A stretch of 64,000 nucleotides of DNA, taken from Epithemia pelagica (taxonomy: Eukaryota; Protista; Bacillariophyta). The notes beneath the pieces are model-generated. The model did not search any database. It had not been told where the DNA came from and saw nothing but the letters and a program-made list of their open reading frames with translations. The position numbers and the translations under genes were made by a program. The stretch is from positions 3,162,001 through 3,226,000 of the forward strand of contig OX337236.1 in the NCBI GenBank assembly GCA_946965045.2. The letters are read 5' to 3'. Positions 11,812-57,435 of this stretch are shown piece by piece (within the stretch, counting starts at the first letter, position 1; each line of letters opens with the position of its first letter).

Positions 11812-12272
11812 GGTTTTGACTGCAGAATTTATGAGGATCAAGAGAGACTAATGCAGAGACTGCAAATTACACTGCGTTTTTGCGGCTGCTGGAATTGCTG
11901 ATGGGTACGGACTGTGTCGCATTGGGTGAGCAGCGCCACGTTCCATCAGAGTAGTGTCTGTCCACGCTTTCCAGACAGTGTCATGGTCCCTTTTTGTCAT
12001 AGGAAACTGTATGTATTGTGAGTGGCTGTGACAACAACGCGTGGAAGTTTTAGAGCGAAAGTGTCTGTCGTGCGTACGGTCAAGCGCGGGGCTGCGACTC
12101 GCACATAAACTTCATGACAGCAACACCAGCCACTCCACGCATCATAAAAGTCGTTGTCGTCCAAGTTTTTCATAGAAGCAGTGTCAGAAGCGACGCAAAT
12201 ATACAGCAAACATGCACGTTCCACTGTTTCACTTTTTAAGCTTGTTTGCTTGCACGGTTGGGAAAAAATACC

Positions 12273-39594: not shown

Positions 39595-40365
39595 TTATGG
39601 GTCGTCGTCCAGAAACTCAGAGCAGACCTTTCCAATGTCTATGCTCTCACGGCTCTCACTAATTTTTGATTCATATATCCATCGAGCCTTGTGCGGAGTC
39701 ATGGGCTCATGAATCCATGGCACAGCCCCCTCACTGTCCATTCCTTCGAATATATCAAGGTGCGGCTTTCCCCCCTTCTTGTCCAAGCATTCGAGGAATT
39801 TAGTCAAGAGTTTGCGGCCCCAGAGAAATTCTTTCCACTGAAAAGGTACAGAGAGTGGAGCGTCTGGATTGTGGACTGCCGTGGGGAGCGCCGTTAGTTT
39901 GCACCTCATGTTGAATTCGCACAGCGTATTGGCGACCCGTTCATTCTGCGTGAGAAACACCAAGTAAACATTCTGGTCCACAAAGGCCTTGTAAAGCATT
40001 CTAGCAAATGAAATGTTGACATCGTTCGGCCCGGGTGAGTTGTATTCGTCAAGAATGAGGATCGAAGAAAGTCGCTTCTCTCGTGGATCAGGCGCCAGCG
40101 CCTGGATGAGGGCCCGAGCCCAACCAGCCGATACTGAAGCACCAAGTAGGCTACTCATGTGCGCAAAATAGTCATCATTTTGGGCAATGCCACTAATCAT
40201 GAGTCCATGTGGAGCATCCGGGAGTTTCGAAAGGCACTGCATTAGGTGTTTTGCAGCAGCGGTCTTTCCCGTGGATGGTGGAGCCAAGCAAACATACGAA
40301 CGTCGAGGAAGCCCATCCTTGAAAATTCTAAAGAGAGCTCGAAATACTTGAGAAAGAAAAGGAGC
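39595..40365 (-). pseudogene. P-loop ATPase copy 3, lacking its native start through a deletion of about 210 bp
   Basis: Walker A APPSTGKT and Walker B ILILDEYN are intact, but TCACTTTTTACG joins directly to CTCCTTTTCT, skipping the ATG and N-terminal codons seen in copies 1 and 2. Confidence 0.8.
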
Positions 40366-41283
40366 GTAAAAAGTGAAACAGTGGAAAGTTAGTTGCTGTC
40401 TGCTGTCTGCTACTTCTCTGAAAAACTTGGACGACAACGAGAGAGGTGAAAAAGGTGTGATTCGGGGTGTGGTTCGTGGTGTGGTTTCCGGGTTCCCAGG
40501 TGTGATTCAAAATAGCTATCTCAGAAAGTTAGCCTAGTTTATACCATCTTACAATAGTCGCCCATAAGAACAATTACACAGATCCCAGACGACATCTGCT
40601 CATATACTTTGATTTAGATCCACATCCCGTCTATTAGACCCCTCCGATTGCGGGGGTACCTCCCGTCTGCTGTCCATACGGTTATTCTCAAATTTTCCTA
40701 AAAAATGTTAAAATTATTTCTATCAAATTTCTTTCGATTTAGCACATTATTATAACGTCCAAGCCAACTGTAATAACTGACTTCGCCCTATTGTGTAGTC
40801 GCTTGCACTCATGCATGACCGACTTGACGAGACGCATGGACAAAGAAATCTACAAGCCCATTTTGTACTCAATAGTCTATTGTTTCAGAAGCGAGTACTC
40901 TTTACGCAGTAGTGGATCTAGCTTCACGGAATCATCACACAAACACACACCAAACCATGAAATACACACACATGGTGCAATGCACCTCTAGAGGAGTATC
41001 AAAACAAGCTCCTGGCACTTTGTCTATGGGAAAGATAAAAGCATAGTCCACTACTAGTTTAGGCTTCCTGCTTCCTGGGCTTACATACCCCATGATGACG
41101 CTGTCAACCAGTGCACTGGTTGATTGTTCATTGCACTGGTTGATTGTCATGTTTCATGTTGTCATCCTTCCTTTGATGCATTCCACCTTCACTTATGATC
41201 TAGGTGGATGGTTTTGACCATAAAGTTGTCACTTTGGTCGTTCGTCCGGCTGGGTGGTTTTCTTTTGGTTTTTGGTGTGCTCA

Positions 41284-42109
41284 GGGTCGGTCTTATCGGC
41301 GTGAAATTTCACACATTTCACACTTCTGGCCGACGTGGCCTGACGTTGCCAAGGTGGGTTGTGAAATTTTTGTGAATTTCACACGAGGCAATTTGAGGCC
41401 CCCCATTGCAGTTTCACCAAAATTTCACAATTCATCTACGTTGACTAGGTGTAATTTTCCCCACAGTACATTAGGACGTTCTTAACCCCTCCACCCTCCA
41501 CAGCAATCACACAGCTATTGCCACCATGGAGTCGTCGTCCAGTGCACCTCCAGAAGAGGGCCATCGCAACAATCAACTCATCGTTTCGGCCGAACAAAAC
41601 AATCCGGGGCCACGACATGACAATGGCACAAAAAGCAACAATCAACTACTCCCCATCTCTGGTTCTTTCAGTTCTACAGTTCTACAACAAACACAACGAT
41701 CAACGCCTTGTTTCGGCCGAACGAGACAATCCTGTGCCGCGACAACGACAACAAACGCAACAACCAACTATAAGTGAAACCATCACTTATATCAATGACA
41801 ACAAGCAGCAGTGGTGGTGACTACATAATATAGGCTTATAATTAGTAGGAGTAAGTCGGTTGTATGTTTTGCACTTGTATGATTGTTGTTTATTACTCGC
41901 ACAGGAAGGGTAAGCGCCTCGTCATGGTGAAAAGGTTCATCGGTACGAGGTACGAGTTACGACTGCGAAAGACTGAGGTTTTGTGTGAAATCAATTTCAC
42001 ACCTATTGCCATCGATCGGACCCTTGTTTTTCACACCCTAAAAACTGCGACATTTGGAAGCTGGATTTGTGTGAAATGAGTGAAATTTCACGCTCGATAA
42101 GACCGACCC
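41284..42109. mobile_element. Tourist-like (PIF/Harbinger) MITE, 826 bp
   Basis: About 40-bp TIRs GGGTCGGTCTTATCG-GCGTGAAATTTCAC(A/T)CATTTCACAC; 3-bp TSD TCA (41281-41283, 42110-42112); internal GTGAAAT/ATTTCAC motifs. Confidence 0.85.
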
Positions 42110-42817
42110 TCAGTGCTCAGTGCTCATGGTCGTCTTTTGTGGAGTTGCTCAAAAAGTGAGACGATTCTTGGCCCATGTGCCAGCAATACAAAGCGTGACC
42201 GGCGCGTCGATTTCGAACGATCGAAGGGAGGCTGGCGATATCACCCGGCTGGCGCTTTGGGAAAAAATACGAGACAATTTTTTCCATTCGGATGACGGAC
42301 GAACAAGGTACCCCAATCGCACCCTATAGGTTACTGAGTGTCTAGCGAATTATCTAATATGTATTTATCCGAATCACACCAGGAATCGCGAACCACACCC
42401 TGAACCACACCCTGGGACCAGGGCTGTGAAGTACCAAAGTCCGATTTTTTACAAAGTATCATACTTCGTACTATACTTTGCGTACTTTACAAATTCCCTT
42501 AGTCTAATCCCTTTCTTTTTTCTAACGGACTTACAGTCCCCTAGTCCAATCCCCCCTCGTCTCCCAACCAGACTTCACCATCACCAGTCCCTCCCCCACC
42601 TTCTCCAGACCAGACTTTAAGTCTGTCACTCTGTCAGTATCATTTTTCTCTTCGTACTATCAGTCTCCCAGTCAAGTACACCCCCAACATATTATGGACT
42701 TACAAGTACAAAGTCACTCCTCATCCTTGCAAAAAAGTACGACCAACAATTCTTCCAGTCACTGCCTGTCCTGATTTTCCAAACAAGCACATAATAACAG
42801 ATGAGGATGATAGATGC

Positions 42818-45800
42818 ATGTACCATGTACCTCTGCGGCAGTGTTTTTCATATCCAAGATGCTTCAACAATCCAACTGTTTTACTTGTTCACACCACAGC
42901 AGCACATCCGAGATCAACAACAACAACGACAATGGAAGACGGAGTAGAAGATACGAACGAATCTCAAGAAGATATTGACCACCAGCCGTCTCCTTCTACA
43001 GAATCAAGAGATTCAAACATGAAGAAACGGCTTTCCACGAACAAGTCTCAACCTAACAACAACAACAACTCCCATTCCGACAACACCAACAAACCTTCAT
43101 CTTCAACGAAAAGTTGCTCTGTCAAGAAGAAGGCTGCCCCTACCAAGAATCCTTCTGCTCCTTCCGGAACCACCCCTACAGAATTACAACAAAAACCCTC
43201 TGCTCTAGAAGCTCATTTGAAACTCTTGGAAGAAGAAATTGCACCGGCCGTTGAAGTGAAGGAGAATTACTTTGCTGTTGAAAAGGCCATCGTCCCAACT
43301 CTTGATTTGCCCAACATGTTATTTTTTGGTGACCCCAACTGTTCAATGTACTGGCACTGGGTCGTTCACATCGACTGGCCAGTATGGGAGAGAAAGCTGG
43401 CCACTGAATTTGAAGACATCCCCAAAACCCTCGGCATCTGCAAGATCATTAAAAACATGGCAACGTATACGAATGTTGGAGACATGACTGCACTTGATTC
43501 TGCTCACACTCCCAGAGCAAAGGACAAGGCAATGCGAGACAAATACGCAAATTTGAGCCGATACATAGTCATCTATGCTGTTTGTTTTGCTGCCAAGGAC
43601 AAGTCATTGGATGAAGCTGTTCTTCTTTGTGGGCAGCAGAAGATGTCAAACATCAAGCAACACAAAGACAAATGGCATAAGGACTCTCCTTTAGAAGACC
43701 CAAATTCTCGACAATCATCGAGTCAAACAACACTGGCATCATACCGTATTCAAAACACATCCAAATCGCAAGCAACAGGCGACTTGCAGAAACTTATATA
43801 CAGGTTTGTGAACGACTGTAACTTACCTGCCATCACTGTTGAAAAGAAGCCCTCCTTCAGTGACCTCCTTCGGTATGCAATCAACAACGCCTCTGCTCTC
43901 AAAGACACACCGGCCGAAGTCATAAGCAGACGGCAGATTACCAAACTACGCATCCATTCCTACCAAGTATTCTTTGGATTGATAAGCGATCTTGTGAATC
44001 ATTGCCGAAATGAATTCGTACGGCTATGTTACCGGAAAGTTCCCTTCATTACGGTTTGTCATGATATTTGGCAGGCTAAAAAGTATGACGTGCTGGGTGT
44101 CACAATCATGTTCACGGACCCAAGGAACTGTGTTGTATATCGGATCCCAATTGGTCCTGCGGAATGTCAAGGCCATGGTGCTACAGACGTTGCTAACTTG
44201 ACCGACTCACTTCTCATTGGCGTTGGCATTACCAGAGATGATCTCTGTGCGTCTGTGAATGATAACACCACTGCCGCAGTCCTAGCCGGTAAATATATCA
44301 TCGGTCACCCGAGAAAGGCCCGCAAATGCGACATGCACAAAACAGAATTGGTGCTCAAACATGCGACTTGACTCGTGGAACGATACCACAATCGCCAGCT
44401 CATGGACTCAAACAAAACCTTCCTAGAGCTTTGGCAGGAGTTCAAACAATTTGCATCTTGGCTAACTAGTAGTCGTGCGCCACAGCGATTTCAAGACTTC
44501 CGTGGTTCATGTCTCAGAATGGGATTGAAAGTCATTTCAATTCCACTCCCCAACGATACAAGGGTTCAAGGTCTTATAATGACGATACAAGCCCTTATGC
44601 GATGCAAGTGGGCGATGGACCATTATGTTGCGTTAACAATCAAGAGCGATGCAAAATTCAAGAAACGATACCCAGAGGAAGACAAATGGGAACTGTTGGC
44701 CCAATATGAGGGCATACTGACTCCGCTGAAACAAGTTGCTTTTAGCCTACAGTCTGACGAACCAGGTGCAAGCTCGGCAGCACTATTGGAGATCTATTGT
44801 TCATACTTCACTGCCACAACAATGTGCTACAAACTCAGCGACAAGTATGGTGGTGTTGCTTGTCTGACAATCAAGAAAGGTAGCGAAAGACAATGGGATG
44901 CCCGTACGGCCATTGACGATTTGGACGAGTTCCGTGATACGATCAAATTCGACGATTTGAAACCTGGACCACGTCTTTTGATTCGACGCATACTAGCTGA
45001 ATATAAGCATTATCTGATGGATCACGACGAGGACAGCATAAAAGCAGTTTGTTGCAATCCACTGCTCGCGAATGTCTTTGAAAACATGTTTGTCCAATTT
45101 GGAGTCTTCGATCAAGACAACGTGAGGACGTGTCGTCAAATTATCATCAAGGACATGGTGGCCAAGTTTAGTAATAAGCATATGTCCCGGATTGGAGCCG
45201 CCCTCGCCAAACAGAATACCAATGAAAGAAATGAGTTGGACAGTGCCGAAGAAGATAATACTCTACCAAAGACAGTAAAATGAAAAACAAGGGATATTTT
45301 TGCCAGCATGCGACGATCTCATGACATCCAACAACAAGCACTGTTACATCTAAGTGGAAAGGCCTCAGCTGCGGCAACGGAACAAGAACTTGTGCAAGCA
45401 CTCCGAAAGAAATGTACCGCATGCTACGACGAGTTTCGGACCTACTGTGAAAACAACATCGATAACCATTGGGCGGCCATCACGGAGGACTATGGGACAG
45501 AACAATATTCAATAGACCGTGAGAAATGGGATGATTACGAACAAGCCAAATTTGAATACAACTGTCGGAATCGAAACTATCTAGAGGTGGGCAGATATTT
45601 CGATCTCATGGCATGGTGGCGTGACTTTTCTGTGCAGTTCCGCTTTCTTTATCCAAGTGCAATGATCTGGCTAGCCAAGCCAGCAACTAACGCATTCCAG
45701 GAACGTGTTTTCTCTATTGGAGCATGGATGCATCAAAATAAGCTAATGGGTAGCCTTTCCAAGAAAGCCAACGAAATGTGCACGATGGACTACATCAATC

Positions 45801-47089
45801 GCGACAAGTTGGTGGAGATTTTGAATAACGAGAACGACGTGAGGAACTGTGTTGGTACAAGTTTGTCTTATGTTCCAGAAACAGGGCCATCTCCTCGGAA
45901 AAATGAACAGGCAACCACTCAACGACAGTCGCTGAAACTCACAGCAATCCAAGAAGTGAAGAAGGGATTTAAGTCATACACTGATTCCTCTCGCAGTACG
46001 AAGAATGTTCTGAAGGATCCCAACATTGTCATGACATTCATCCATACATCAGCAGAGGAGGGGCCGATCCAACCCGACGCTGAAGTGTCTCAAGAGGGTG
46101 ACAGTAAACAAGATGAAGCGTTCAGGACAAAGGAAGATGAAAAACGCGAAGATGGCAATCACAATGATGTACAGGACAGTGAGCTGGGAAAAAAGGACGA
46201 CGATAGGGTTGAGCAGGGAAGCAAGGCTGAACAGGGAAGTAAGGTCAACGTCTACAATATGAATAAGAAGGCCAACAAAGACAAGAGTCCTCCAGTGATG
46301 AAGGTGGCGAACCGAGTAAAGTTTGTGAAAGTTCCTAAACGATTCAACGATGATTCTGACGATGAGTCAATCGATTTTTCGTCGTCTGACGAAGATAGTG
46401 ACAACGCAATCGACAATCTCATCGACGAAAATTTACCCAGCTATGGACCTACGAAAGATGAAAGGCAAGTAGTCGACCGGCAAGGGGAAGAAAGAGAAAT
46501 GGGACCAGGACAGGAAATGGGAACAGAGCAGGAAATGGGAACAGGACAGGCGGCGGAAAACCAATCGCAAAAAAGAAAGAAAACATCATCGTCCTTTGCC
46601 ACAAGGGGGGAAAAGGCGCCAAAGAAGAAAATATCGAAACAAGCATCGAAACAAACAACAATGAGTGCAACATCCCTTACGACCCTGTCCAACAAAACAA
46701 AAAAGAAAACCAAGCGCCAACAAACAACGATGCAACCAAAAAGAGTGTCTCCGAGAAAGAAAAAAGGCGAATCATCCGCCACCGCAACCGCTGTTGCGAG
46801 CATTGCAATAGGTTTATCTGGGAAGCAAAACCGAACAACACCTCCATCTGCTAGATTGGTGCGCAAGAAGCAGCGCAAGGAAGAATTGGAGAAAGAGTTG
46901 GAGGCTTTTTACGATAACGACGTATCCCAGGACGACCCTCAGGTCAGTGACCAGATTAACCAAGAAATGAAGGGTGTGGTGAACGAGTCAGAGGACGAGG
47001 AAGAAGAAGAAGAGGAGGAGCAAGAACAAGACATTGAAGAGAATGATGAGGGGCTAGATGAGGATGAAGAAGATGAGAACGAGTTTTAG
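42818..47089 (+). pseudogene. hAT transposase, one 1424-codon frame interrupted by two in-frame TGA codons (44369-44371, 45281-45283)
   Basis: BED-like C..C...SNIKQH...H; CHDIW (D), NDNTTAA (D), CDMH (CxxH); dimerisation domain WW...LYPSAMIWLAKPATNAFQERVFS (E). The three ORF-track pieces share one frame. Confidence 0.9.
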
Positions 47090-47173
47090 TGATAAGAGAA
47101 GTAGTTTGAATAAGAAGATTAGCAGCAAGAAGAAATTAAGTAATATAATTCAATGATACGTGTTAATCATTCT

Positions 47174-47974
47174 TTACACCTTGTTGAACAATTCAGTATC
47201 AAATTTGTCGGTCTTAGACAAACGAGTGAGGAGGTTTGTTCGTTTGTGAATTGTTGCCGAGTGTTGTCCCAAGGCTCCAAATAGTGGGTTAATGTAGGAC
47301 CATTTGTCTTTCGGAACCCATGACTGTAAGTGCTTCGACGTTGCCAATCCATTCAAATTTGGTGGTACCCATCCAAAGGCGGCAGACCAACGAATAACGT
47401 GAATATCGGCCGGGATTCCGTCGACTCTACCAAATGCGGACTCCAGTATGATACAAGCGGTCTTGTATCCGATTCCGTTCAGTGTTATTAATTCGTGGAT
47501 TGTTATCTCTTTCGGAATGGTTCCATTGTGCTTTTGTATAAAGTAGTCTGCGGCATTAACGATCCGCTCTGTATTCTGGTAGTAGCGACCAGACTCGGAA
47601 AGAAGACAATACAGAGCGTCCATTCCATATTTCTCAGCAATTTCCAAAACAGCGGCAGCCGAAGTCATACCACATGCAAATAGGCGAGGCATTATGGTGC
47701 TTAGCTGTACGTCTGACGTACTCGAGCTCATGCAGATTGTCATCAAAACCATAAAGGGCCTGTCGGCAAGAGGTTCAGCGGCGTGGTTGTCAATCCATGC
47801 CTCCCATTTGTCTCGAGGGGCCATGAATCCGTAGAACTTCAGTTCCTCATGAAAATTTGTCATTTGGGATAGTTCATGTAAATGACGATCCAAGATAGTG
47901 CAAGGGATGGATGGTGTGTCGAAGTTCAAATCAGAACGACGAACCTGTTTGAGTTTAGGAGCGGTACCAGGCAT
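47174..47974 (-). CDS. Endonuclease III/Nth-like HhH-GPD DNA glycosylase/AP lyase carried inside the hAT
   Basis: PFMVLMTICMSSSTSDV, HNGTIP, HhH LITLNGIGYKTACIILESAFG (catalytic Lys), IPADIHVIRW (catalytic Asp) and LQSWVPKDKWSYINPLFGALGQ match the Nth pattern; no 4-Cys FeS motif. Confidence 0.88.
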   Translation of the reverse strand: MPGTAPKLKQVRRSDLNFDTPSIPCTILDRHLHELSQMTNFHEELKFYGFMAPRDKWEAWIDNHAAEPLADRPFMVLMTICMSSSTSDVQLSTIMPRLFACGMTSAAAVLEIAEKYGMDALYCLLSESGRYYQNTERIVNAADYFIQKHNGTIPKEITIHELITLNGIGYKTACIILESAFGRVDGIPADIHVIRWSAAFGWVPPNLNGLATSKHLQSWVPKDKWSYINPLFGALGQHSATIHKRTNLLTRLSKTDKFDTELFNKV

Positions 47975-48960
47975 ATGACGGTCGGTATTATCATCATCGA
48001 AATAATGATTTTTTTTTTGGATCGGGACGTGGATTGCAGAAACATTGCTTTTATGTTGTTCCTGGATCTTGTCGAGTAATTGTGCGTAGGTGTTGTTGGT
48101 TTTTTTTTGGAAGCAGGAGCCTTTGTTGATTTGTCATTGGAGGAAGACGGAGTTGTTGGGGTGGGCTTGGTAGGTACAGGAATAGGAAGTTTTTCGATGG
48201 AAACTTGATCATGTGATAAGGCATGGTTTGTTTGTGATGGTAGCTCCAAAAGGGGGGAAATGTCCGAGAACATACACTCCAACTCTTTGAAATAGGGAGT
48301 TGTGCAATATGGAATGCACATACTTCCATTAGATTCTTCTTCCGCGCACGGGCATAAAATGAAACCATTGACAAAATACTGTGGAGATTGTGTACAACGT
48401 ATTCCAATAGAATTCTCCAACATCCAGGAAATGATGACGGCTTGTACCGAGACGGTAGGACAACTTCCTCTGATCCTTTTGGTGTTCAACATGCATTCAT
48501 GAAACACAGGGGACCGGTTTATCGTTAGCTTGGGTGTGCATTGTGTAATAAGTAGAAGATTGATGGCATGATCTGGTTCGAATGGTTCAAATTCATGTGC
48601 CGAATGATTGGGAACTTGTGGAGATGGTCCGACAAAAAAAGTTACGACAACGGATGCAATAATCTCAAGCATGTCTGGGTATCGTAATTCATATAATTGG
48701 CATGGGTGATTTGCCAATTCACCAGTGTTCTCTTCTTCGTGGAAAATGACAGCATTGTTCTGTATCAGCCATGCAATGGTTGCACGTTTCACGGATTGGA
48801 CCAGTTGTCTCCTGAGGAGGTCTTGGTGTGTTTGTTGTTTGATGTGGTTGTGCATGGCGTCGTTATAAGAGAGGTTTGATCGTAGAATGAACTTGAGGTT
48901 ACAGGTAGAATGGAAATGAATGAACGTGGGTGTAATAGGTTCGTCCATTTCTTCAGCCAT
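47926..48960 (-). CDS. Unknown hAT cargo ORF, probably the N-terminal half of the glycosylase fusion
   Basis: 344-codon ORF overlapping the glycosylase frame; a one-base shift in the T10 run (48009-48018) fuses the two frames without stops. Confidence 0.6.
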   Translation of the reverse strand: MAEEMDEPITPTFIHFHSTCNLKFILRSNLSYNDAMHNHIKQQTHQDLLRRQLVQSVKRATIAWLIQNNAVIFHEEENTGELANHPCQLYELRYPDMLEIIASVVVTFFVGPSPQVPNHSAHEFEPFEPDHAINLLLITQCTPKLTINRSPVFHECMLNTKRIRGSCPTVSVQAVIISWMLENSIGIRCTQSPQYFVNGFILCPCAEEESNGSMCIPYCTTPYFKELECMFSDISPLLELPSQTNHALSHDQVSIEKLPIPVPTKPTPTTPSSSNDKSTKAPASKKKPTTPTHNYSTRSRNNIKAMFLQSTSRSKKKIIISMMIIPTVICLVPLLNSNRFVVLI

Positions 48961-49477
48961 GGTTCGGTTGTAGGGGCATGGTGAAGGGGGTGATGAGATG
49001 ATTTGTTTGCTGCTGGGTGTGTAATGTGAAGTGTTGCTGCAGTGTGCAGTGACTCGGGCGGATGACCGCAGGAAGCATGTTCAGAACTACAAAAAGTATA
49101 CTTGGACTTCGTACTATAAAGTAGGTACTTTACTCAAAAAGTACCGAAGTATATGGGTAGTTTGTGGAAGGATTATAGTCCTTAAAGTGTAGTCCCTCCA
49201 TCTTATTGAGTGGACTATAGTACATACCCTAAGTACTTGTCGTCTTCTAGAAGGGACTTAAGTCTGACGCTGTAGTCCTATTAGTAGGCACTAGCAGACT
49301 ATAGTCTTTTAGATAAAGCGATTGTTGTGTCTGTAATGTACTATAGTTGTTAAGTATAGTCTTATGGGTATCAAGAGGGGATTGTGTATTCTCTAGTCTA
49401 GTCTACTAAAGTATTTCAGCAAACTTATAGTCCTGTAGTCTAGTCTCATGTGAAATGTGCGATACTTCACAGCCCTG

Positions 49478-50788
49478 GGACACCCGCTATATTTGTAACC
49501 ACGACCCCATTGGGCTTATTTCTGGTTGGCTGAGATGACTGTACCTCATTTTTCTACACTACCGAAAAAGACATAGGCACGTGTCAAAAAATTACTTAAA
49601 TCTAGCAATTTTTGAAGTCAGAGAAGCCATGCGCGGAGATTCGCCAAATGTATCGGATGCTGTATCGATGCACATACAACTGTATCCAGTCGTGTATCGG
49701 GGTTGTATCTAGTTGTACCGGGGGGCTTAGGTACTGTATCGATACAACGGATTTGTATCGGTTTTTGTATCGGGGGACTCGAGTCCTCTGTATCGGGTCT
49801 TCCGAACTTGTTGCGATTTGTATCGGGCTAATGTATCGAGCTCCCCGGTGCGAAATTTCACTGCGCTCCTACATACGAGCTCCACCGCACTGAAATTGCA
49901 CAAGCAGTAGCCCGTGCTTTTTTGGTCCCCACTGTTTTTTCTATAGTGATTCTAGTTTCGTAAGAAAACCACTACGGTCGTTTTGCACAGCATAACACCA
50001 CCATGGACGATAAAGACCGCTGCGCACCTCCAACGAAAGGTCCTAGTACTCCTCTGAACACCCAGGAGGCTTGATCTTCATGTGTACCGTGAAGGGTGAA
50101 AAGGGCGGCGTTAAGATATCTGTTTTCATGGACCTACGGCAAGATCTAGAAGACCTTCCATTTTTGGGTTGGAAGGAAACAACAAGAGGATCAAGATTGG
50201 AGTCCGATAATGGTGGAATGAACGAAGATTGCAGGGATGGACGACAAGTGGTGACAACGACAACAACAATCAACTACTCGCTGCCGCCGAACGAAACACT
50301 CGGCGACAAGGACAACACTCGGACAACAACAACCCCAATGCAACAATCAACGATCGAACATGCGTTTTGCGATGACGGTTTGTGCAGACTCATTTTTGTT
50401 GTAGTATCGGGGGTATTTTGTATCGGGGGTGTGTATCGGGGTTTCGTCGATTTGTATCGGCTGTATCGACCCCCTTGTATCGTTTGTATCGGGGTTGTAT
50501 CGGGTTGTATCGGGTTGTATCGTTTGTATCGGAATTTGTATCGTTTGTATCGGATGTTGTTTCGAACAGTTGTATCGTTTGTATCGGGTTGTATCGACCC
50601 TCGCCAAATGTGCCGATTCATGTATTTTCCTCTCTATGTATTCTAATTTACAGAAATATCAATATCGATAAGTATTTTGTTCTATTATAGTGTACCAAAA
50701 AGAAAATGAACTTGTCCGTCCTTCGCTCCTTTCGGTATATTCTGTTCAAGGTCCATTAGAGCTATGGTTACAAATATACCGGGTGTCC
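49478..50788. mobile_element. Harbinger-type MITE, 1311 bp, inserted in the terminal CTG of the hAT
   Basis: 24-bp TIR GGACACCCG(C/G)TATATTTGTAACCA (23/24 match); TSD CTG (49475-49477, 50789-50791); TGTATCG arrays at about 49650-49840 and 50400-50612. Confidence 0.9.
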
Positions 50789-51039
50789 CTGCCTGGGACA
50801 CCCGGCATTTTGGTTCCCCCAGAATGACTTTACCTAAACTCCTATTGGGTAGCTAGGGCTGATCGCTAATTTTGCTAGGGCTAGCTATATTATTTTATGC
50901 ACAATAGGGTTCGGGTCAAAGACACATGTTCAAGACCAAACAAATTATTGTTAATTATTAGTTTTCTTATGTCGCATATGAGTCTTGTATTATGATGATC
51001 GCTAAATCTTTCCATTTTGAGTCGTGTTGGTTTCGGGTT

Positions 51040-51213
51040 GGTCCCGATTTTAACGTCTGGTTTCGACTTGGTGTCCAGTGGTTTCGACTTGGTGTCCAGT
51101 GGTTTCGACTTGGTGTCCAGTGGTTTCGAGTTGGTTTTGACGTTGGTTTCGACGTTGGTTTCGACGTTGGTTTCGACGTTGGTTTCGAGTTGGTTTCGAG
51201 TTGGTTTCGACTT
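51040..51213 (+). repeat. Subterminal array of 11-bp GGTTTCGA(C/G)TT-type units, left
   Basis: Direct reading; a same-strand twin lies at 55405-55578. Confidence 0.9.
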
Positions 51214-51419
51214 CTCGCGAACGCAATAATCAACCATCTCTTGCAACATCGCTTCTGGCGACGAAAGGAGTTGTAAAAGCGAGCGAGAGGGTGCTCACTT
51301 TGTCTTGGCGACAAGAGGAGTGGTAAAAAAGCGAGTGAGAGCGTGATTTGTTCGGCAGGAGTTCAGACTCAAAAAACTACAGGAGGAAAGAAGTGACAAG
51401 ACGAAGTGGCAAGACGAAC

Positions 51420-51887
51420 ATGACCGAGAACAACAAGAAATCCTCCAACCTACCGCCCATCAACGAGAGGAAAGGGGCGAGAATCAAGATTGTGGTGGGG
51501 ACCTACAAGGGGCTACGAGCATGGGTTGACACGGCAAAGGAGTGCACCCGCTACTACACCCCTGTAATCATCCAAGTCAAGTCGAATCCGACGGTGTTGA
51601 AGGCGACGAGAATTCAACACACAAGTTTTGTGATGGAGGCCCAGGTTCAGACACCATCGAACAAAGAAGAGGCCATGATCTTCGAAAATGCTGATATGTT
51701 GGAGATGTTTACTGTGCTGACGAGGAAAATGGCAGAGTTTGAGGAAATCTCTGCATCAGGAGAAGGTGGAAAGCGCATCGCAACACTATTTCTTAAATTT
51801 CTGAACACAGCAATTTCCGAACAGAATGCCTTACCCAACGAAAAGGCCCGCTGGCGCCGAATCAAATTCAATGGTGGAAGCCGTTAG
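51420..51887 (+). CDS. Harbinger accessory ORF A (155 aa), KOW-like N-terminus
   Basis: Intact ORF from MTENN; KGARIKIVVGTYKGLRAWV resembles a KOW motif; lies inside the TIRs. Confidence 0.6.
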   Translation: MTENNKKSSNLPPINERKGARIKIVVGTYKGLRAWVDTAKECTRYYTPVIIQVKSNPTVLKATRIQHTSFVMEAQVQTPSNKEEAMIFENADMLEMFTVLTRKMAEFEEISASGEGGKRIATLFLKFLNTAISEQNALPNEKARWRRIKFNGGSR

Positions 51888-51968
51888 TATAGAGCCACAA
51901 TAACCACTAGTGCATTTCAGACAAAGAATTCGCTTTTACTATTATGTAGTCAATTACTAGATGTGTGC

Positions 51969-53437
51969 CTATTCGGAGAACATGTTCCTGGCCTCAGCCT
52001 CCTGAGTCTTTTGAGACTGCTTACCACCAATCTTTTGGCCACCAGAGATGGCAATGCGCCAATAAAGGGTCATGGCCAAGATATCTTTCCCAAACAGATT
52101 GACAGGGTGATCCTTCTTGAGCTTGAGGGGATTCTTGATCATTGGCACCACGTTGTCATCCTTCGAGAAAATCTTGTTGTCCAAGACAACGCCCGGGGAA
52201 AAAACAAAGAGCCAGAGCGCGACCTGGCGCCATTTTTCCTTCAAATCGTCAATCGCGACTTCAGTCGCACTGTGAGCCTTTAAAGTCGCGTCGCAATTCA
52301 CCTTCGAGTCCCTACCAATTCCTTCGTGGTAACGCTCAGTGTCGCGAACAAAAAATCCTGAGCGGGACCCTTGAACCGAATCAACCGTCCGTGCCACATC
52401 TCCTCATAGTCTCTGTCAGGGATTGTCGCCTCCCAAGCGTTCATATCCGGGCATGCGACATGCCTGCGAACATGGAATCCGTTGCGAGTGAAGAAGCCTT
52501 CGTGATTTATGCCCTGGACAAACTGCACGTCAAAGTCGCGGTGGCGCTCAGCATACTTGGAAATCGGCACAATCCAAGGATGTTGCACCGTGCCATTCTG
52601 TTTCACAAACCACGAAATCGGAATGAAGGGATGGCTAGGAGAAGAATTGGCGGCAGCGGACACCAAAGGTGACAGTTGGCCAAAGCGATGCTGCTGTTGG
52701 CCCGGGACGAAAGAACGGGCCATAGGGGGACGGGGAGGTGTATGGAACATCGCGGAAGCTTCGTGGTTGTTGTTCTGGTGACGGATGGCTGGCGGTGGAT
52801 GAGCCCTGGCTGCAGGTTTTGTGTCTTCATCTTCATCCAACAATCCAACTTGCTGGAAGTTATCTGAAAGCGAGGCCACGTCATCCTATGGAGGAGGAGG
52901 ATTGATGCCGTTGCTGTCAAACAGCATGGCATACGGGTCCTCGTGTTCTTCAACGATGATCTCTTCGCTGGTGGTGTGGGAGTTGGAGGCGGTGGACGAG
53001 TTGTCCGAGGGAGGGGCTTTGTTCTGCTTCATGTTCTTTGATGCTGCTGCAAACTCTGCAAACTCTGCCAAGCTGACTTTGCATGGTATCACGCCAAGCT
53101 TGTTCAGGTATGAGATGTGAGCCTTGATGCTCCGATTCTTGCACTTGGCCCAACGCTGTTGGACCTGTCGCCGAAGCGTCGATCCTTCGGCTCCGAAAAC
53201 TGACGGGTTTGAGTCGCATAGACTCCAAAGGTCGAAGGTGTCTCGAGTATTCCCCGAATGCTCAAATGAATCAAGAAGCCGTTTTGTGACGTCTTCGTTC
53301 AATCCACCGACAGCAGCTCGCTTCTTTCTCTTGGGATGCTCAGGGGCGGCAACAGGGGGATCGTCCTCAGCGTGAAACTGGTGATCCCAATCTTTCTCTT
53401 CCTGGATGGATGCTTGTTCTTGTTGTGAGCCTTCCAT
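51969..53437 (-). pseudogene. Harbinger accessory ORF B (about 490 codons) with an in-frame TAG (52886-52888) and a frameshift in a T6 run near 52350
   Basis: ORFs 52886-53437 and 52298-52879 are in frame across the TAG; one added T joins them to 51969-52397; globular segments such as LWSLCDSNPSVFGAEGSTLRRQVQQRW. Confidence 0.7.
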
Positions 53438-53837
53438 GTTGTTGGTTTTTTGGAGAGATGCTGCTACGGTCGAAAGAGAAACCGGACTGGCGCCAATCTA
53501 CTTCTACCAAGTTGGCCATCGTCACCATTGCACATGGTGGTTCACGGCCCATCACATTCATTAATGGATAACAATATTCTAGAGTTTGATTGACGCATTC
53601 ATATGTATTAGGATGTCTACTTAGATGCTGTCTTCCTTGTTTCTACTAACGAGTTGAGAACTCGTGAATTTGCTGGCGCGTGTTGGTCAATCTACCCACG
53701 GGTCCTCATCATCATTATCATGTGTCTTCAAGGGCTACGAGTGTGACACATTGGACTAGTGAGTGACCTTCCTGAATGCCGATGGAGTTCTGCTCCAACT
53801 TCAATCCATGCGTCACATTTTGCAACAATCAAAAAGA

Positions 53838-54758
53838 ATGACTCTTCAGCCGTCGGAAGTTCTTGAAAGGGGCCTACGGCTTCTGGATGTGGACAATGAT
53901 GGTACATTGGCATTGGAACGACGACGACTGAAGTTCAGAAAGCACTACGGGTCTCACCCGTTGGTGATTACTGCACAATGGTTTGACCTATGCCACGCAA
54001 CAGACGACAATGGAGAGCAACTACTTTCTACGAATGAGAAGAAGAGAGGGTTTAAGATGTTCATGGTTGCGCATTACTTTCTCTACAACTACACGAGAAA
54101 TAGTGAGCAACTTGCTGATCGCTTTCAAATGTGTGAGAGCTATGCTCGAGGTGAGCATCTGTGGGTGTGGATTCGAAAAATTGCGTTTCTCGAGAAAAAG
54201 GTAATTTTCTGGCCGAGAATTCTGGACAGCCCCACCTCGGAGGTCAATGCATTGTCCGTTGACGGTGTGGACAAAAAGACTTTTGAGCGCAAGCACAAGA
54301 CGCAGCTGCTTCCGTTTGATTGCGGGAATTGTTCGCACAAGCATGCTCACGGTGCTCTCAAATATCAGATTGTAATGGCCGCGCACCGACCGCGGTGTGT
54401 TCATATATATGGCCCTGTGCGTGGTGGAATGGGGGACAAGGAGATGCTTGAACGGTCTGGCGTCTTGGCACGACTCAAGCCGGGCAAATTGATCGTGGCT
54501 GATCGCGGTTACATCAAGAAGGAGTTCGGTGGGAAAATTTCCTGGCCCAATCCCCAAGAAGATTCCAAAGAAGCGAATAATCTCAAGAGCCGGATCCGTC
54601 TTCGGCATGAAAGTTTCAACGGGAAAATGGCTGCGTTTAGATGCCTCAAGCAAACGTGGAGGCACTCAGACGACAAACACGGCATTGCGTTTCGTGCAGT
54701 GGCTGTGACAGTCCAGTATGCACTCGATAATGGCACAAGTCTCCTATTTGAGCCATAG
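53838..54758 (+). CDS. PIF/Harbinger-type DDE transposase (DDE_Tnp_4-like), intact
   Basis: LSVDGVD (D), HKH...LKYQI, IVADRGY (D), RIRLRHESFNGKM (E); between matching TIRs. Confidence 0.9.
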   Translation: MTLQPSEVLERGLRLLDVDNDGTLALERRRLKFRKHYGSHPLVITAQWFDLCHATDDNGEQLLSTNEKKRGFKMFMVAHYFLYNYTRNSEQLADRFQMCESYARGEHLWVWIRKIAFLEKKVIFWPRILDSPTSEVNALSVDGVDKKTFERKHKTQLLPFDCGNCSHKHAHGALKYQIVMAAHRPRCVHIYGPVRGGMGDKEMLERSGVLARLKPGKLIVADRGYIKKEFGGKISWPNPQEDSKEANNLKSRIRLRHESFNGKMAAFRCLKQTWRHSDDKHGIAFRAVAVTVQYALDNGTSLLFEP

Positions 54759-54812
54759 ATTCATCCATAAATTCATTCTAGTTGAGAATTGGTTTTCTAC
54801 TATGTTTTATTT

Positions 54813-55404
54813 CTATGCTAGGATGCGTTTTGCGAGTTCTCGGCGTCGCATCAACTCGTCTATTGGAGAGATCGGAGGCAGATTGGCTTTCTGTTTGGCT
54901 TCCTCTTCCTTGAGCCGCAAGTAGTTGAAGAAGCGAACTCGTCTCACTTCTTGATAGATTCGAAACTTGAAGATTTCTGGCTTGAATTCCATGTAGGCAG
55001 GACGAGTCTTCCTCAGTGCCATGGGCTTCAAACTTGAGGTGGACGCCATTGGCCACGTCCATTCGGAGAAGGTACTTTGCTGGATGGATGTCAAAGACCA
55101 GCTCTCCACGGCAGTTTCGGTCCTTCCTCGGATGGACGCGACGGTCGACTTGTTGTGCCTTGTGGTCTCGTTCCATTAAGGCCTTCGCGTCGTTTGATTG
55201 TTTTCGGTGGTCCTTGAGCCTTTCCTTGAATTGATCGAACAGGACGTCTGCAAATTCTGGGAGTTTCTTGTAAAACTCAAAGAGGTGCGCAGCCGGAACA
55301 ACGTCCATGTTGTGAAGGAGACCACCCGGCTCGAGGTCTCTCACAAGAATGGCCCGTGCCGCACTAACACGCCAATCAACCCATCCGGAGCGTCGTGGTG
55401 GCAT
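54813..55404 (-). pseudogene. Harbinger accessory ORF C (about 196 aa, two internal helical repeats) with a +1 frameshift at 55030-55032; candidate DNA-binding partner
   Basis: W..S.A..IL..DL...F..F..RL is repeated as F..HPAK.LL..D...RP.Y..F....F..RIYQE; removing one T joins ORFs 54778-55479 and 54813-55109. Confidence 0.65.
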
Positions 55405-55578
55405 GGTTTCGGGTTGGTTTCGGGTTGGTTTCGGGTTGGTTTCGAGTTGGTTTCGAGTTGGTTTCGAGTTGGTGTCCACTTGTTTCCACTTGTTTCGAGT
55501 TGGTGTCCAGTGGTTTCGACTTGGTTTCGACGTGGTTTCGACTTGGTTTCGACGTGGTTTCGACTTGGTTTCGACGTT
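55405..55578 (+). repeat. Subterminal array of GGTTTCG(A/G)(C/G)TT units, right
   Basis: Direct reading; same orientation as the left array. Confidence 0.9.
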
Positions 55579-56238
55579 ACCTTAAAGCTACACGTGGCTC
55601 TGACATGGGGACTCGAAAACATTTCTTGTCTAAACCCTAATTTAACGTCAAAAATCAATTTTGATCTTATTTCAAGATCAAAACACTTAATTATCAATAA
55701 AGTCAACGGATATTGATGTTAAGTAGTGAACTTATTGTGTTGTAGGCGATCGCTAAATTCACACTGTACCAATTTAGAAGACTACCACGAAAGCGGAAAA
55801 GTCCAAGCTGCTACCAAAGTACCGGGTGTCCCTGAACCACACCTTTTTAGATCTCCCCGACGACAACGGCTCGGAACATATCACATGATGTGGGTGTGCG
55901 TGCATATGGAGTGGTTGGTGTTGCTGTCATGAAGTTTATGTGCGACTCGCTGCCCAACGTTTGACCGTACGCACGACTGACACTTTCGCTCAAAAGCTTC
56001 CACACGTAGTTGTCACAGCCACTCTCAATTCACAACCTCAGTTTCCTATGACAAAAAGGGACCATGACACTGTCTGGAAAGCGTGGACAGACACTACTCT
56101 GATGGAACGTGGCGCTGCTCACCCCATGCGACACAGTCCGTACCCATCAGCAATCCCAGCAGCCGCAAAAACGCATTGCAATATTTGCAATCTCTGCATT
56201 AGTCTCTCGCGATCCTCATAAATTCTTCAGTCAAAACC

Positions 56239-57435
56239 ATGCGCATGACAATGCAAGAACAAGCATGGCAGTCGGGCCTTGTCCTTCTCGATGAGAGAGA
56301 AGAATGGAATGACAACGACTGGCCTCCTCTTGAGGGTGGATGGCGCGAGCATCATGCCTCGGTCGTAATTGATCATCCCGATACGGATAACGCTAGCAAC
56401 AAGAGGGGGGAGACGGTCGTCGTGTTGGGCGGATATCAACAAGGCCAAGGCAATGTCAACTCCGTTCTTGCATTGAATTTGGCAGATTCCAACAAGCAGT
56501 GGCGAGAAGGGCCACCCATGAATCAGAAACGTTCTAACCACGCCGCGGTTGTGTGCAACGGAGGCATCTACGTGATGGGAGGGTACAGTAATGGTTCAAC
56601 TTTGGACTGTATGGAACGGATTGACTCTAATGATTTTAGTGCACTTGAGAGCCATTGGACGACATTGACATGTCGATTATCAACGCAACGATTTGGATGT
56701 TGTGCTGTTGCGGTCCACAATCGATATATTGTTGTTATGGGTGGCTACAATGGTCGTTATTTGTCTTCGGTGGATATCATTGATACCAGTACTCACACGG
56801 TCACTGCGGGACCAAGCATGACTGTTCCACGAGAATGGTGTGCCAGTGCGGTCATTGGTCACCGCATCTATGTCGTTGGAGGCCGAAAAGAGCACAACAG
56901 CCGACTTGACTCGGTGGAGTACATTGACTTTGCAATGCCTTGTGATAGTGAGAAGACAAAGGAGGAAACGGCTGCTACAGTAACTTCCTTCTCGTCCAGT
57001 TGGACCACTCATTCTGAGCTGGAGCTTCCCAATGCACGAAGTTCATGTGCAGTGGTTGCCGTGGGATCCTGTCTGGTGGTGGCGGGAGGACGAGGCAATT
57101 CAACCGTGGAAGTATTGGATACGAGCCGCAACCGCGTGTGGAATTTCCCATCACTTGGTAATCACTGTCTAGGCTGCAGTATAGTTACTGTTGCTCATCA
57201 AGTTGCCGTGATTGGTGGGTACGAGAATCCTACCTGTGCGACATTGCCACTACAGGACAAGAATTCGTGGTGTTTCCGTCGACTCTTTGACCACCATCCA
57301 AACGAATGGTACCAGTTCCGGGAAGGAATGGGTAACCGAGATGTGAATGCAACATCCTGCTCTGTCTTGACATGCATTCGTAAACGAGTCAGGACCAATA
57401 CATGTCATGGTGGTAAAGAGGAGGAGTGCACTTAA
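56239..57435 (+). CDS. Kelch-repeat protein, copy 5 (398 aa)
   Basis: Same Kelch motifs; the tail is nearly identical to copy 1; upstream 55930-56230 is the reverse complement of 6040-6320. Confidence 0.9.
   Translation: MRMTMQEQAWQSGLVLLDEREEWNDNDWPPLEGGWREHHASVVIDHPDTDNASNKRGETVVVLGGYQQGQGNVNSVLALNLADSNKQWREGPPMNQKRSNHAAVVCNGGIYVMGGYSNGSTLDCMERIDSNDFSALESHWTTLTCRLSTQRFGCCAVAVHNRYIVVMGGYNGRYLSSVDIIDTSTHTVTAGPSMTVPREWCASAVIGHRIYVVGGRKEHNSRLDSVEYIDFAMPCDSEKTKEETAATVTSFSSSWTTHSELELPNARSSCAVVAVGSCLVVAGGRGNSTVEVLDTSRNRVWNFPSLGNHCLGCSIVTVAHQVAVIGGYENPTCATLPLQDKNSWCFRRLFDHHPNEWYQFREGMGNRDVNATSCSVLTCIRKRVRTNTCHGGKEEECT

Follow-up and report, generated by a model that had tools for sequence, protein, structure and literature searches.

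The region analysed is a 64,000-nucleotide stretch of Epithemia pelagica contig OX337236.1 (the window). At 40430-55868, as read from the assembly sequence of this 60.5-Mb eukaryotic genome, a 15.4-kb pile-up sits in the divergent promoter region belonging to one copy of a Kelch-gene cassette that occurs repeatedly. Its components are a short outer element with a 10-bp TSD (the shell), a ~860-bp element (the sixth element), two MITEs (MITE1 and MITE2), a Harbinger-type element and a hAT. They are listed here together with the corresponding empty site.

12152-12161, minus strand: paralogous empty site with a single GACGACAACG copy, in another tandem copy of the cassette, lying between a Kelch gene and its divergently oriented neighbour
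40430-40439, no strand: left copy of the shell TSD, GACGACAACG, identical to 55859-55868
40440-40639, plus strand: shell left arm, an inverted end of GGTGTGGTTC-like sub-repeats
40640-42324 (+/-1 bp), plus strand: sixth element, ~860 bp, non-autonomous and multicopy, split by MITE1; ends CCCTCCGATTG... and ...CAATCGCACCC
41284-42109, plus strand: MITE1, PHIS/Harbinger-derived and non-autonomous; TSD TCA at 41281-41283 and 42110-42112
42325-42414, plus strand: shell right arm, through the CTG hit by the Harbinger (42412-42414)
42411-42418, no strand: left copy of the hAT TSD, CCTGGGAC, made of one shell base, the Harbinger TSD and four Harbinger bases
42412-42414 and 55832-55834, no strand: Harbinger TSD CTG; ends GGAC...GTCC
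42415-42418, plus strand: first four Harbinger bases, GGAC, cut off by the hAT
42419-49477, plus strand: hAT of 7059 bp; its inverted ends, CAGGGCTGTGAAGTA, match perfectly over 15 bp (16 bp with one flanking base)
49478-50788, plus strand: MITE2, a 1311-bp non-autonomous CWG-type PHIS; TSD CTG at 49475-49477 and 50789-50791
50792-50799, no strand: right copy of the hAT TSD, CCTGGGAC, identical to 42411-42418
50800-55831, plus strand: remainder of the Harbinger, with DDE_Tnp_4 (Pfam, 45.6 bits)
55835-55858, plus strand: final 24 bp of the shell, a 100% match to the right ends of relatives on C18, C5 and C6
55859-55868, no strand: right copy of the shell TSD, GACGACAACG, by direct reading

A first-pass annotation had described this interval as a five-element nest with every junction resolved. 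The nesting and its coordinates hold, and direct reading finds every listed junction string in its place, but the count rises to six, as the element at 40640-42324 had been overlooked. When the elements were excised in silico one after another, contiguous sequence was regained at every step. The final excision leaves one GACGACAACG copy, and the 20 bases of flank and TSD are the same as in the inverted paralogue at 12152-12161, as had been proposed. Reverse-order removal had also been said to restore three units of a repeat; two full AACCACACCCTG units are restored, but the third is truncated, as it is in the relatives. Empty sites were found for four of the six insertions (shell, sixth element, Harbinger and MITE1). 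The Harbinger, the hAT and the elements that partner the two MITEs all show transposase homology. Free-standing copies at other places in the genome have the anticipated termini and TSDs. A close copy of the hAT is lacking from the genome, where the nearest match has 65-67% DNA identity; confirmation of its ends thus comes from related families only.

All six components come from repeat families, the usual source of mis-joins, and an assembly chimera of collapsed or mis-joined repeats could mimic nesting. A mis-join, however, would not yield exact TSDs (10, 8, 3, 3 and 3 bp) just where the element ends require them; the chance odds of exact repeats at positions fixed by inverted ends are ~1e-6 for the 10-bp and ~1.5e-5 for the 8-bp repeat. 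Nor would a hAT TSD built from the bases of two other elements be expected, and the assembly is chromosome-scale, in 23 contigs. We regard a chimera as highly improbable and the pile-up, judged on the assembly sequence alone, as very probably a genuine nest of six cut-and-paste transposons.

The shell proper comprises only 313 bp. Bases 1-112 of its left arm share 95% identity with the left ends of elements on C18 and C5, and bases 139-199 match the right-hand part of the same elements; the right arm, in these two relatives, runs on into the last 24 bp of the shell. The empty-site string is GAAAAACTTGGACGACAACGGCTCGG. Within the family, TSD copies agree at 10 of 10 positions in the window and on C18 and at 9 of 10 on C5. 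The shell had been called MULE-like with a 10-bp TSD. The TSD is confirmed, and the MULE label draws on its length, within the 8-11 bp that define MULEs (PMC3903597), and on imperfect inverted ends of ~50 bp that need a 1-bp offset. Non-autonomous MULEs resemble the shell in these features and in having heterogeneous relatives with only the ends in common; they differ in that the outermost ~9 bp of the shell ends are poorly matched and no MULE/MURA domain is present in any shell relative. No Mutator transposase turned up when the larger relatives were searched with Pfam, with a language-model atlas and in a large-scale protein search; the language-model search gave only a weak MULE lead (0.79). 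The C5 relative contains a piggyBac-type transposase and a helicase fragment, and a 794-aa ORF in the C18 relative returned no Pfam hit and three homologues without domains. Since a transposase was found neither for the shell nor for the sixth element, both are unclassified at the protein level, and on its termini the shell may be a MULE. Three further loci have only the 24-bp terminal motif in common with the shell and hold unrelated host-like genes. The C6 shell copy carries a 2.0-kb insert within 1 bp of the Harbinger site; the insert lacks inverted ends and resembles none of the sequences compared.

The sixth element is a repeat in its own right, with at least 40 other matches in each DNA search (85-96% identity, unrelated flanks) and with 59 5' ends and 44 3' ends in the genome. 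The shell relatives on C18, C5 and C6 lack it at this site and so provide its empty site. No consistent TSD was found for it, and its flanks read W|W, neither A|T nor T|T. A Helitron or Helentron identity was rejected on insertion context and on the Rep/helicase partner: of the 20 Helitron_like_N matches, not one falls within the three larger intervals that sixth-element ends delimit (C8:2631160-2636697, C16:2378055-2383941 and C2:2875652-2888051). A Spy-like PHIS was also considered, and one DDE_Tnp_4 match lies in the 12.4-kb end-bounded interval on C2.

For the Tourist-like MITE that had been reported at 41284-42109 with TSD TCA (MITE1), coordinates and TSD are correct, but its direct host is the sixth element and not the shell. 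MITE1 is absent from all eight other sixth-element copies read at the site, and the two halves of the sixth element abut in all other copies among the matches listed. Its excision leaves three GTGCTCA units, one 7-bp unit more than the two found in those eight copies. Ends of the family begin GGGTCGG..., with TSD TCA or TGA, as seen in five of five free copies; three of the free copies are full-length (97-100% identity). Two 3142-bp elements with MITE1 ends encode DDE_Tnp_4 (70.3 bits). Because MITE1 is 100% identical to another copy, it is probably still active.

In the right end of the shell, a Harbinger-type element can be read at CTG 42412-42414 / 55832-55834, exactly as first described. 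It totals 5036 bp, with a DDE_Tnp_4 transposase ORF at 53763-54758 and sub-terminal direct 11-bp tandem arrays at 51022-51213 and 55396-55578. Its further ORFs are conserved in a 96-98% copy on C5 and have no Pfam Myb/SANT match at E<0.01. Free copies of the family begin GGACACCCG right after CTG/CAG, and excision of the hAT restores GGACACCCG in the window. A sister family (70-80%) has eight copies with CTG TSDs, and the C18, C5 and C6 shell relatives supply the empty site. Across the CWG family, the same CTG/CAG stands on both sides in 15 of 22 free loci, with one locus mismatched and six single-ended. MITE2 had been placed in the final CTG of the hAT, and this is borne out by CTG on both flanks and by CWG-type ends. 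A 97% free copy with TSD CTG is present on C11, and the MITE2 ends are 90-91% identical to those of at least eight ~5.07-kb elements encoding DDE_Tnp_4 (partner, 44.2 bits).

The hAT transposase frame (42818-47089) is interrupted by in-frame stops at 44369-44371 and 45281-45283, and its three pieces are collinear with the intact 1152-aa transposase of a hAT on C5. The Pfam Dimer_Tnp_hAT score of the window copy is 21.2 bits against a cut-off of 21.4, whereas the intact collinear relative passes with 26 bits. On the minus strand, two overlapping frames at 47174-48960 make up a second gene, which matches endonuclease III and NTH1 structures in the PDB; both genes are broken in the window copy. 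The element shares with the hAT superfamily (Ac, hobo, Hermes) the 8-bp TSD, short CAG...CTG ends and, in the intact relative, a C-terminal dimerisation domain, and differs from it in bearing the endonuclease III-like gene. A related hAT element on C5 has an exact 8-bp TSD, CCTCGGAT, on both sides, and 94 CAG...CTG ends of the hAT class were counted in the genome.

The nest had been credited with a readable insertion order. The ordering logic stands, but the result is a partial order in two branches rather than a single sequence: shell before sixth element before MITE1, and shell before Harbinger before hAT before MITE2, the mutual order of the branches not being fixed. The hAT sits 4 bp inside the left end of the Harbinger, and its TSD is indeed C plus the Harbinger TSD plus four TIR bases. 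Since this TSD holds shell and Harbinger bases, the hAT insertion took place at this locus, after that of the Harbinger. MITE2 lies between the hAT end and the hAT TSD and is therefore later than the hAT; both steps agree with the first-pass annotation. The CCTGGGAC string also occurs at 49474-49481, and a parse with MITE2 first and the hAT second was rejected, as the hAT would then lack 4 bp at its right end and an extra CCTG at 50792-50795 would be left unexplained.

The transposition events can be reconstructed from these junctions as follows. The shell, a 313-bp deletion derivative of the 10-bp-TSD family, would have inserted first. The ~860-bp non-autonomous element with no consistent TSD would then have entered the middle of the shell, and a PHIS-type MITE with TSD TCA would later have entered that element. 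Independently of these two insertions, a 5-kb CWG-type PHIS/Harbinger would have entered a CTG 24 bp from the right shell end. The 7-kb hAT would have inserted in situ 4 bp inside the left end of the Harbinger, duplicating 8 bp that cover shell, Harbinger TSD and Harbinger, and the 1.3-kb CWG-type MITE would finally have targeted the terminal CTG of the hAT.

Containment is not the same as arrival order at the locus, and part of the nest could have been formed elsewhere and have arrived as a composite, the candidates being the shell with the sixth element and/or the Harbinger, and the sixth element with MITE1. The Harbinger spares the outer 24 bp of the shell and the sixth element spares both shell ends; mobilisation of the shell might therefore still have been possible, and rice MULEs that carry a Tourist MITE are a documented case of composite movement (PMC3903597). 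Against this, none of these combinations occurs in any other genomic copy found, and the closest shell relative, on C6, has neither the sixth element nor the Harbinger. For the hAT, with shell bases in its TSD, and for MITE2, which cuts the hAT end from its TSD, a composite is excluded. We consider composite arrival unlikely for the remaining elements, and infer that no composite moved as a unit and that the six elements inserted one by one.

Successive hits fell close to an end of the host element, at 24 bp, 4 bp and 0-3 bp, and under uniform targeting the odds of such positions are ~0.003 for the hAT and ~0.01 for MITE2. These hits could reflect a real transposase preference for the ends of resident elements and not chance. 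The insertion of the related C5 hAT spans the end of an element of the shell family, and its TSD, CCTCGGAT, is similar; two CWG-family copies on C7 lie 7 bp inside another such end; and CCTNGGAY-like hAT targets are, by estimate, enriched about threefold (14 further ends versus ~5 expected). Such a preference could act through target motifs in the ends or created beside them, or through the local state of the DNA. These examples were, however, noticed post hoc, and a CWG-type end within 12 bp accompanies just one of the ~94 hAT ends of the class, the one in the window. As a general rule, end-targeting was rejected, a pattern search having returned the window's own case alone. We therefore think it improbable that ends of resident transposons are preferred landing sites; if the preference were true, nests would extend from their ends, with the larger part of each host element left unbroken.

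Insertion order has been read from TSDs and containment in the intergenic retrotransposon nests of maize and in nested MITEs of maize and rice. Nested insertions in MULEs have been described (PMC3903597), and region-specific nesting is reported for LTR elements (PMC6911290). Like known nests, the one described here has elements inside one another, each with its own TSD, inner elements younger than outer ones, and paralogous or orthologous empty sites as proof. It differs in that all six elements are DNA transposons, of at least three superfamilies, within 15.4 kb of a small 60 Mb genome. Nested transposons with a readable order are a long-known phenomenon, of which this is a tidy but ordinary example, and knowledge of how transposons nest is unchanged by it. 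Its value is that of a clean example, resolved in full, of DNA transposons nested within one another in a small genome of algal type; at least four families would have been mobile one after another at a single promoter. Exact ends and TSDs for six families would also allow better repeat annotation of this genome.

The term Harbinger-type, used in the first reading, is correct at the superfamily level (DDE_Tnp_4, 3-bp TSDs). By TSD, the two lineages in the nest look like NuwaI (CWG) and NuwaII (C|TNA|G target), as defined by Han et al. 2015 (PMC4482050), rather than classical PIF/Tourist (TWA). NuwaI elements and the window's CWG family share the CWG TSD, G-rich inverted ends, a DDE_Tnp_4-type transposase with further ORFs and a length of 4.5-5 kb; the window-family ends start GGA versus GGG in NuwaI, and the other ORFs have no Pfam Myb/SANT match. 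The MITE1 family shares with NuwaII a TNA-type TSD, ends starting GG and a partner with two ORFs, one of them DDE_Tnp_4. All six MITE1-family sites are TCA/TGA; two of the six, the window included, have the full C|TNA|G context, whereas the other four differ from NuwaII in lacking one flanking C or G. BLASTP detected no similarity between the CWG and MITE1 lineages, which weighs against placing both in the single Nuwa clade of PMC4482050. NuwaI was reported there from animals only; that NuwaI-like CWG PHIS are abundant outside animals is a second proposal, more modest than a preference for transposon ends, and one we make very tentatively. The window's elements suggest a wider taxonomic range for the CWG-type and TNA-type PHIS lineages than the one listed when they were described in 2015.

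Every junction of the transposon nest, read directly from its sequence, lay exactly where the first-pass annotation had placed it. The nest is thereby confirmed, with the logic of its insertion order, and is extended from five elements to six. Three points of that annotation need correction: how many elements there are, which of them hosts the first MITE (MITE1, labelled Tourist-like), and how firmly the outermost element (the shell) can be labelled a MULE. Transposon nests whose insertion order can be read from target-site duplications (TSDs) have long been known; the value of this nest lies in being a clean example and in the family definitions that it gives for this genome. The eukaryotic assembly comprises 60.5 Mb in 23 contigs (C numbers below), with the window at C9:3162001-3226000. 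The window contains several copies of a cassette, one of which, the interval from the divergent ORF to the Kelch-repeat gene, holds the nest.

Features of the nest and its neighbours
39595-40437, divergent ORF, one neighbour of the nest
40440-55858, shell; TSD GACGACAACG at 40430-40439 and 55859-55868
41284-42109, MITE1; TSD TCA at 41281-41283 and 42110-42112
42415-42418 and 50800-55831, Harbinger; TSD CTG at 42412-42414 and 55832-55834
42419-49477, hAT; TSD CCTGGGAC at 42411-42418 and 50792-50799
44369-44371 and 45281-45283, in-frame stops in the hAT transposase
47174-48960, minus strand, endonuclease III/NTH1-like (HhH-GPD) gene inside the hAT
49478-50788, MITE2, a Harbinger-type MITE; TSD CTG at 49475-49477 and 50789-50791
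56239-57435, Kelch-repeat gene, the other neighbour

In silico removal of the elements in reverse order regained contiguous sequence at each step, as had been claimed. The last step restores 20 bases identical to those of the inverted paralogue (12152-12161); to the right of these, indels separate the two copies until the alignment resumes. One shell base, the Harbinger CTG and four Harbinger bases make up the hAT TSD; the hAT therefore inserted at its present locus after Harbinger. MITE2 sits between the hAT inverted end and the hAT TSD; as a hAT already carrying MITE2 could not have used the separated end, MITE2 came last. Both steps are as first proposed. Containment places the shell before the sixth element and that before MITE1, and the shell before Harbinger. 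The order is thus partial, since nothing places the sixth-element branch before or after the Harbinger branch. Identities to the nearest copy (shell 93-95%, sixth element 95-96%, Harbinger 96-98%, MITE2 97%, MITE1 100%) are compatible with this order and add no resolution to it. The shell and its direct guests may have arrived as a composite, but no other genomic copy carries the combination.

Searches with shell-interior DNA each gave at least 40 other matches, covering only 40640-41283 and 42113-42325, which are contiguous in other copies. These two stretches make up an independent element of ~860 bp with sharp ends, CCCTCCGATTG... and ...CAATCGCACCC; across the genome, 59 5′ ends and 44 3′ ends of this element were counted. 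Flanks are A/T-rich and unrelated between copies, and no consistent TSD was found at them. The eight other copies whose sequence was read at the MITE1 insertion site do not contain it, and the halves abut in all other copies among the matches listed; the host of MITE1 is therefore this sixth element and not the shell, as had been thought. After in silico removal of MITE1, three tandem GTGCTCA units remain at its site (41274-41283 / 42110-42126), and the eight other copies have two. None of the genome's Helitron Rep genes lies inside the larger intervals bounded by sixth-element ends; one DDE_Tnp_4 match lies inside such an interval of 12.4 kb on C2.

Without its guests the shell measures just 313 bp. 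It belongs, as a deletion derivative, to a family in which it has two larger relatives, of 5.5 kb on C18 (TSD ATGTTTTCGG, 10/10) and 8.4 kb on C5 (TSD 9/10); these two have only their first 418 bp and last 181 bp in common. The sequences that border the sixth element run on without a break in both relatives and in a partial copy on C6, and so do those that border Harbinger; all three thus represent empty sites for these two guests. The 10-bp TSD and the imperfect inverted ends of ~50 bp fit Mutator-like elements, for which a published study uses a TSD range of 8-11 bp (PMC3903597). The MULE-like label is nevertheless too strong, as no MULE transposase was found in the larger relatives; the sole MULE signal for the family is a weak language-model lead (score 0.79). 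The C18 relative carries a 794-aa ORF without a Pfam domain, and the three homologues of this ORF are domain-less too. The C5 relative (retrieved stretch L002, 4302-7685 and 8783-9292) carries a piggyBac-type transposase ORF (DDE_Tnp_1_7, 157 bits) and a Helicase_C fragment, which is either another nest or host DNA captured in the manner of Pack-MULEs. The C6 copy, near a contig end, is interrupted by an unrelated insert of 2007 bp (L056 1361-3367, C6:5860-7866), which lies within 1 bp of the CTG that the window Harbinger used. This insert lacks inverted ends, shows a TSD of no more than one C and resembles no other sequence retrieved in the analysis.

The hAT has perfect 15-bp inverted ends, of a class with 94 ends in the genome, and no close genomic copy; its nearest relatives share 65-67% DNA identity. 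An intact-looking relative of 6807 bp on C5 (L033 43-6865, C5:3713283-3720105; exact 8-bp TSD CCTCGGAT) encodes an intact 1152-aa transposase above the Pfam hAT dimerisation cut-off. Three frame pieces of the window hAT are collinear with this transposase, and the stops between them are thus real breaks. The endonuclease III-like gene is likewise broken: around 47926-47974 it falls into two overlapping frames. A transposase and an endonuclease III-like gene occur in the same relative position in several hAT families of this genome related at 65-70%, and the pairing is present in the intact C5 relative too. That relative is inserted precisely at the right end of the shell relative on C5, and its TSD comprises one element base and seven bases of the shell relative's own TSD.

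In the Harbinger branch, the distance from the insertion point to an end of the host element is 24, 4 and 0-3 bp for the three inner insertions. One hypothesis is that new insertions prefer the ends of resident elements: under uniform targeting the odds are ~0.003 for the 4-bp case (hAT) and ~0.01 for the 0-3-bp case (MITE2), the C5 hAT likewise straddles the end of a shell-family element at a similar target, and hAT targets resembling CCTNGGAY are enriched about threefold (14 further ends against ~5 expected by our own estimate). Yet a CWG-type element lies within 12 bp only in the window among ~94 hAT ends, and we therefore hold end-targeting to be a low-probability lead.

Free-standing copies, the test proposed in the first-pass annotation, bear out the ends and TSDs of MITE1, MITE2 and the CWG family (Harbinger-type elements with GGAC...GTCC ends). 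MITE1 has three full-length copies elsewhere (97-100% identity) and shares its ends with two 3142-bp elements, a partner encoding a DDE_Tnp_4 transposase (70 bits); GGGTCGG...CCGACCC ends with TGA or TCA flanks occur in all five. MITE2 has one 97% copy, on C11, and its ends are present at 90-91% in at least eight ~5.07-kb elements encoding DDE_Tnp_4. Harbinger has one 96-98% copy, on C5, with the first 95 bp replaced by another repeat, and eight copies of a 70-80% sister family. Among 22 free GGAC...GTCC loci, matching CTG or CAG copies flank the element on both sides at 15, the two sides disagree at one, and only one end is visible at six, so the TSD of this family is CWG. The nest Harbinger transposase is 63% identical to that of the MITE2 partner, and BLASTP found no similarity between it and that of the MITE1 partner. 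Judged by TSD, these two lineages fit two groups of the PHIS superfamily described in PMC4482050, NuwaI (CWG targets), which that study found in animals only, and NuwaII (C|TNA|G targets), respectively.

Arrays of ~11-bp units (GGTTTCGAGTT-like) lie near both Harbinger ends (51022-51213 and 55396-55578) in direct rather than inverted orientation, and may be sub-terminal repeats bound by the transposase. A six-frame search of the whole genome gave 106 DDE_Tnp_4 matches, the majority of them within open frames 300-560 aa long. This genome is very rich in PHIS/Harbinger elements, many of which look intact. Both MITEs contain internal modules of ~400 bp (41560-41955 in MITE1, 49874-50247 in MITE2; also 1180-1558 in the window), themselves multicopy at dozens of loci (76-94% identity) and adjoining each other at some (C3:1806308-1807505, C7:1504720-1506224). 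The MITE2 module is the repeat that replaces the first 95 bp of the C5 Harbinger copy. It may be a captured gene start or another mobile element. Two ~5.07-kb CWG-type elements (L037 and L039; C7:1186272-1191352 and C7:1296765-1301747) each lie 7 bp inside another GGAC-type inverted end and have their outer flank in common, the pair being either a nest that was duplicated or a mobilised composite.
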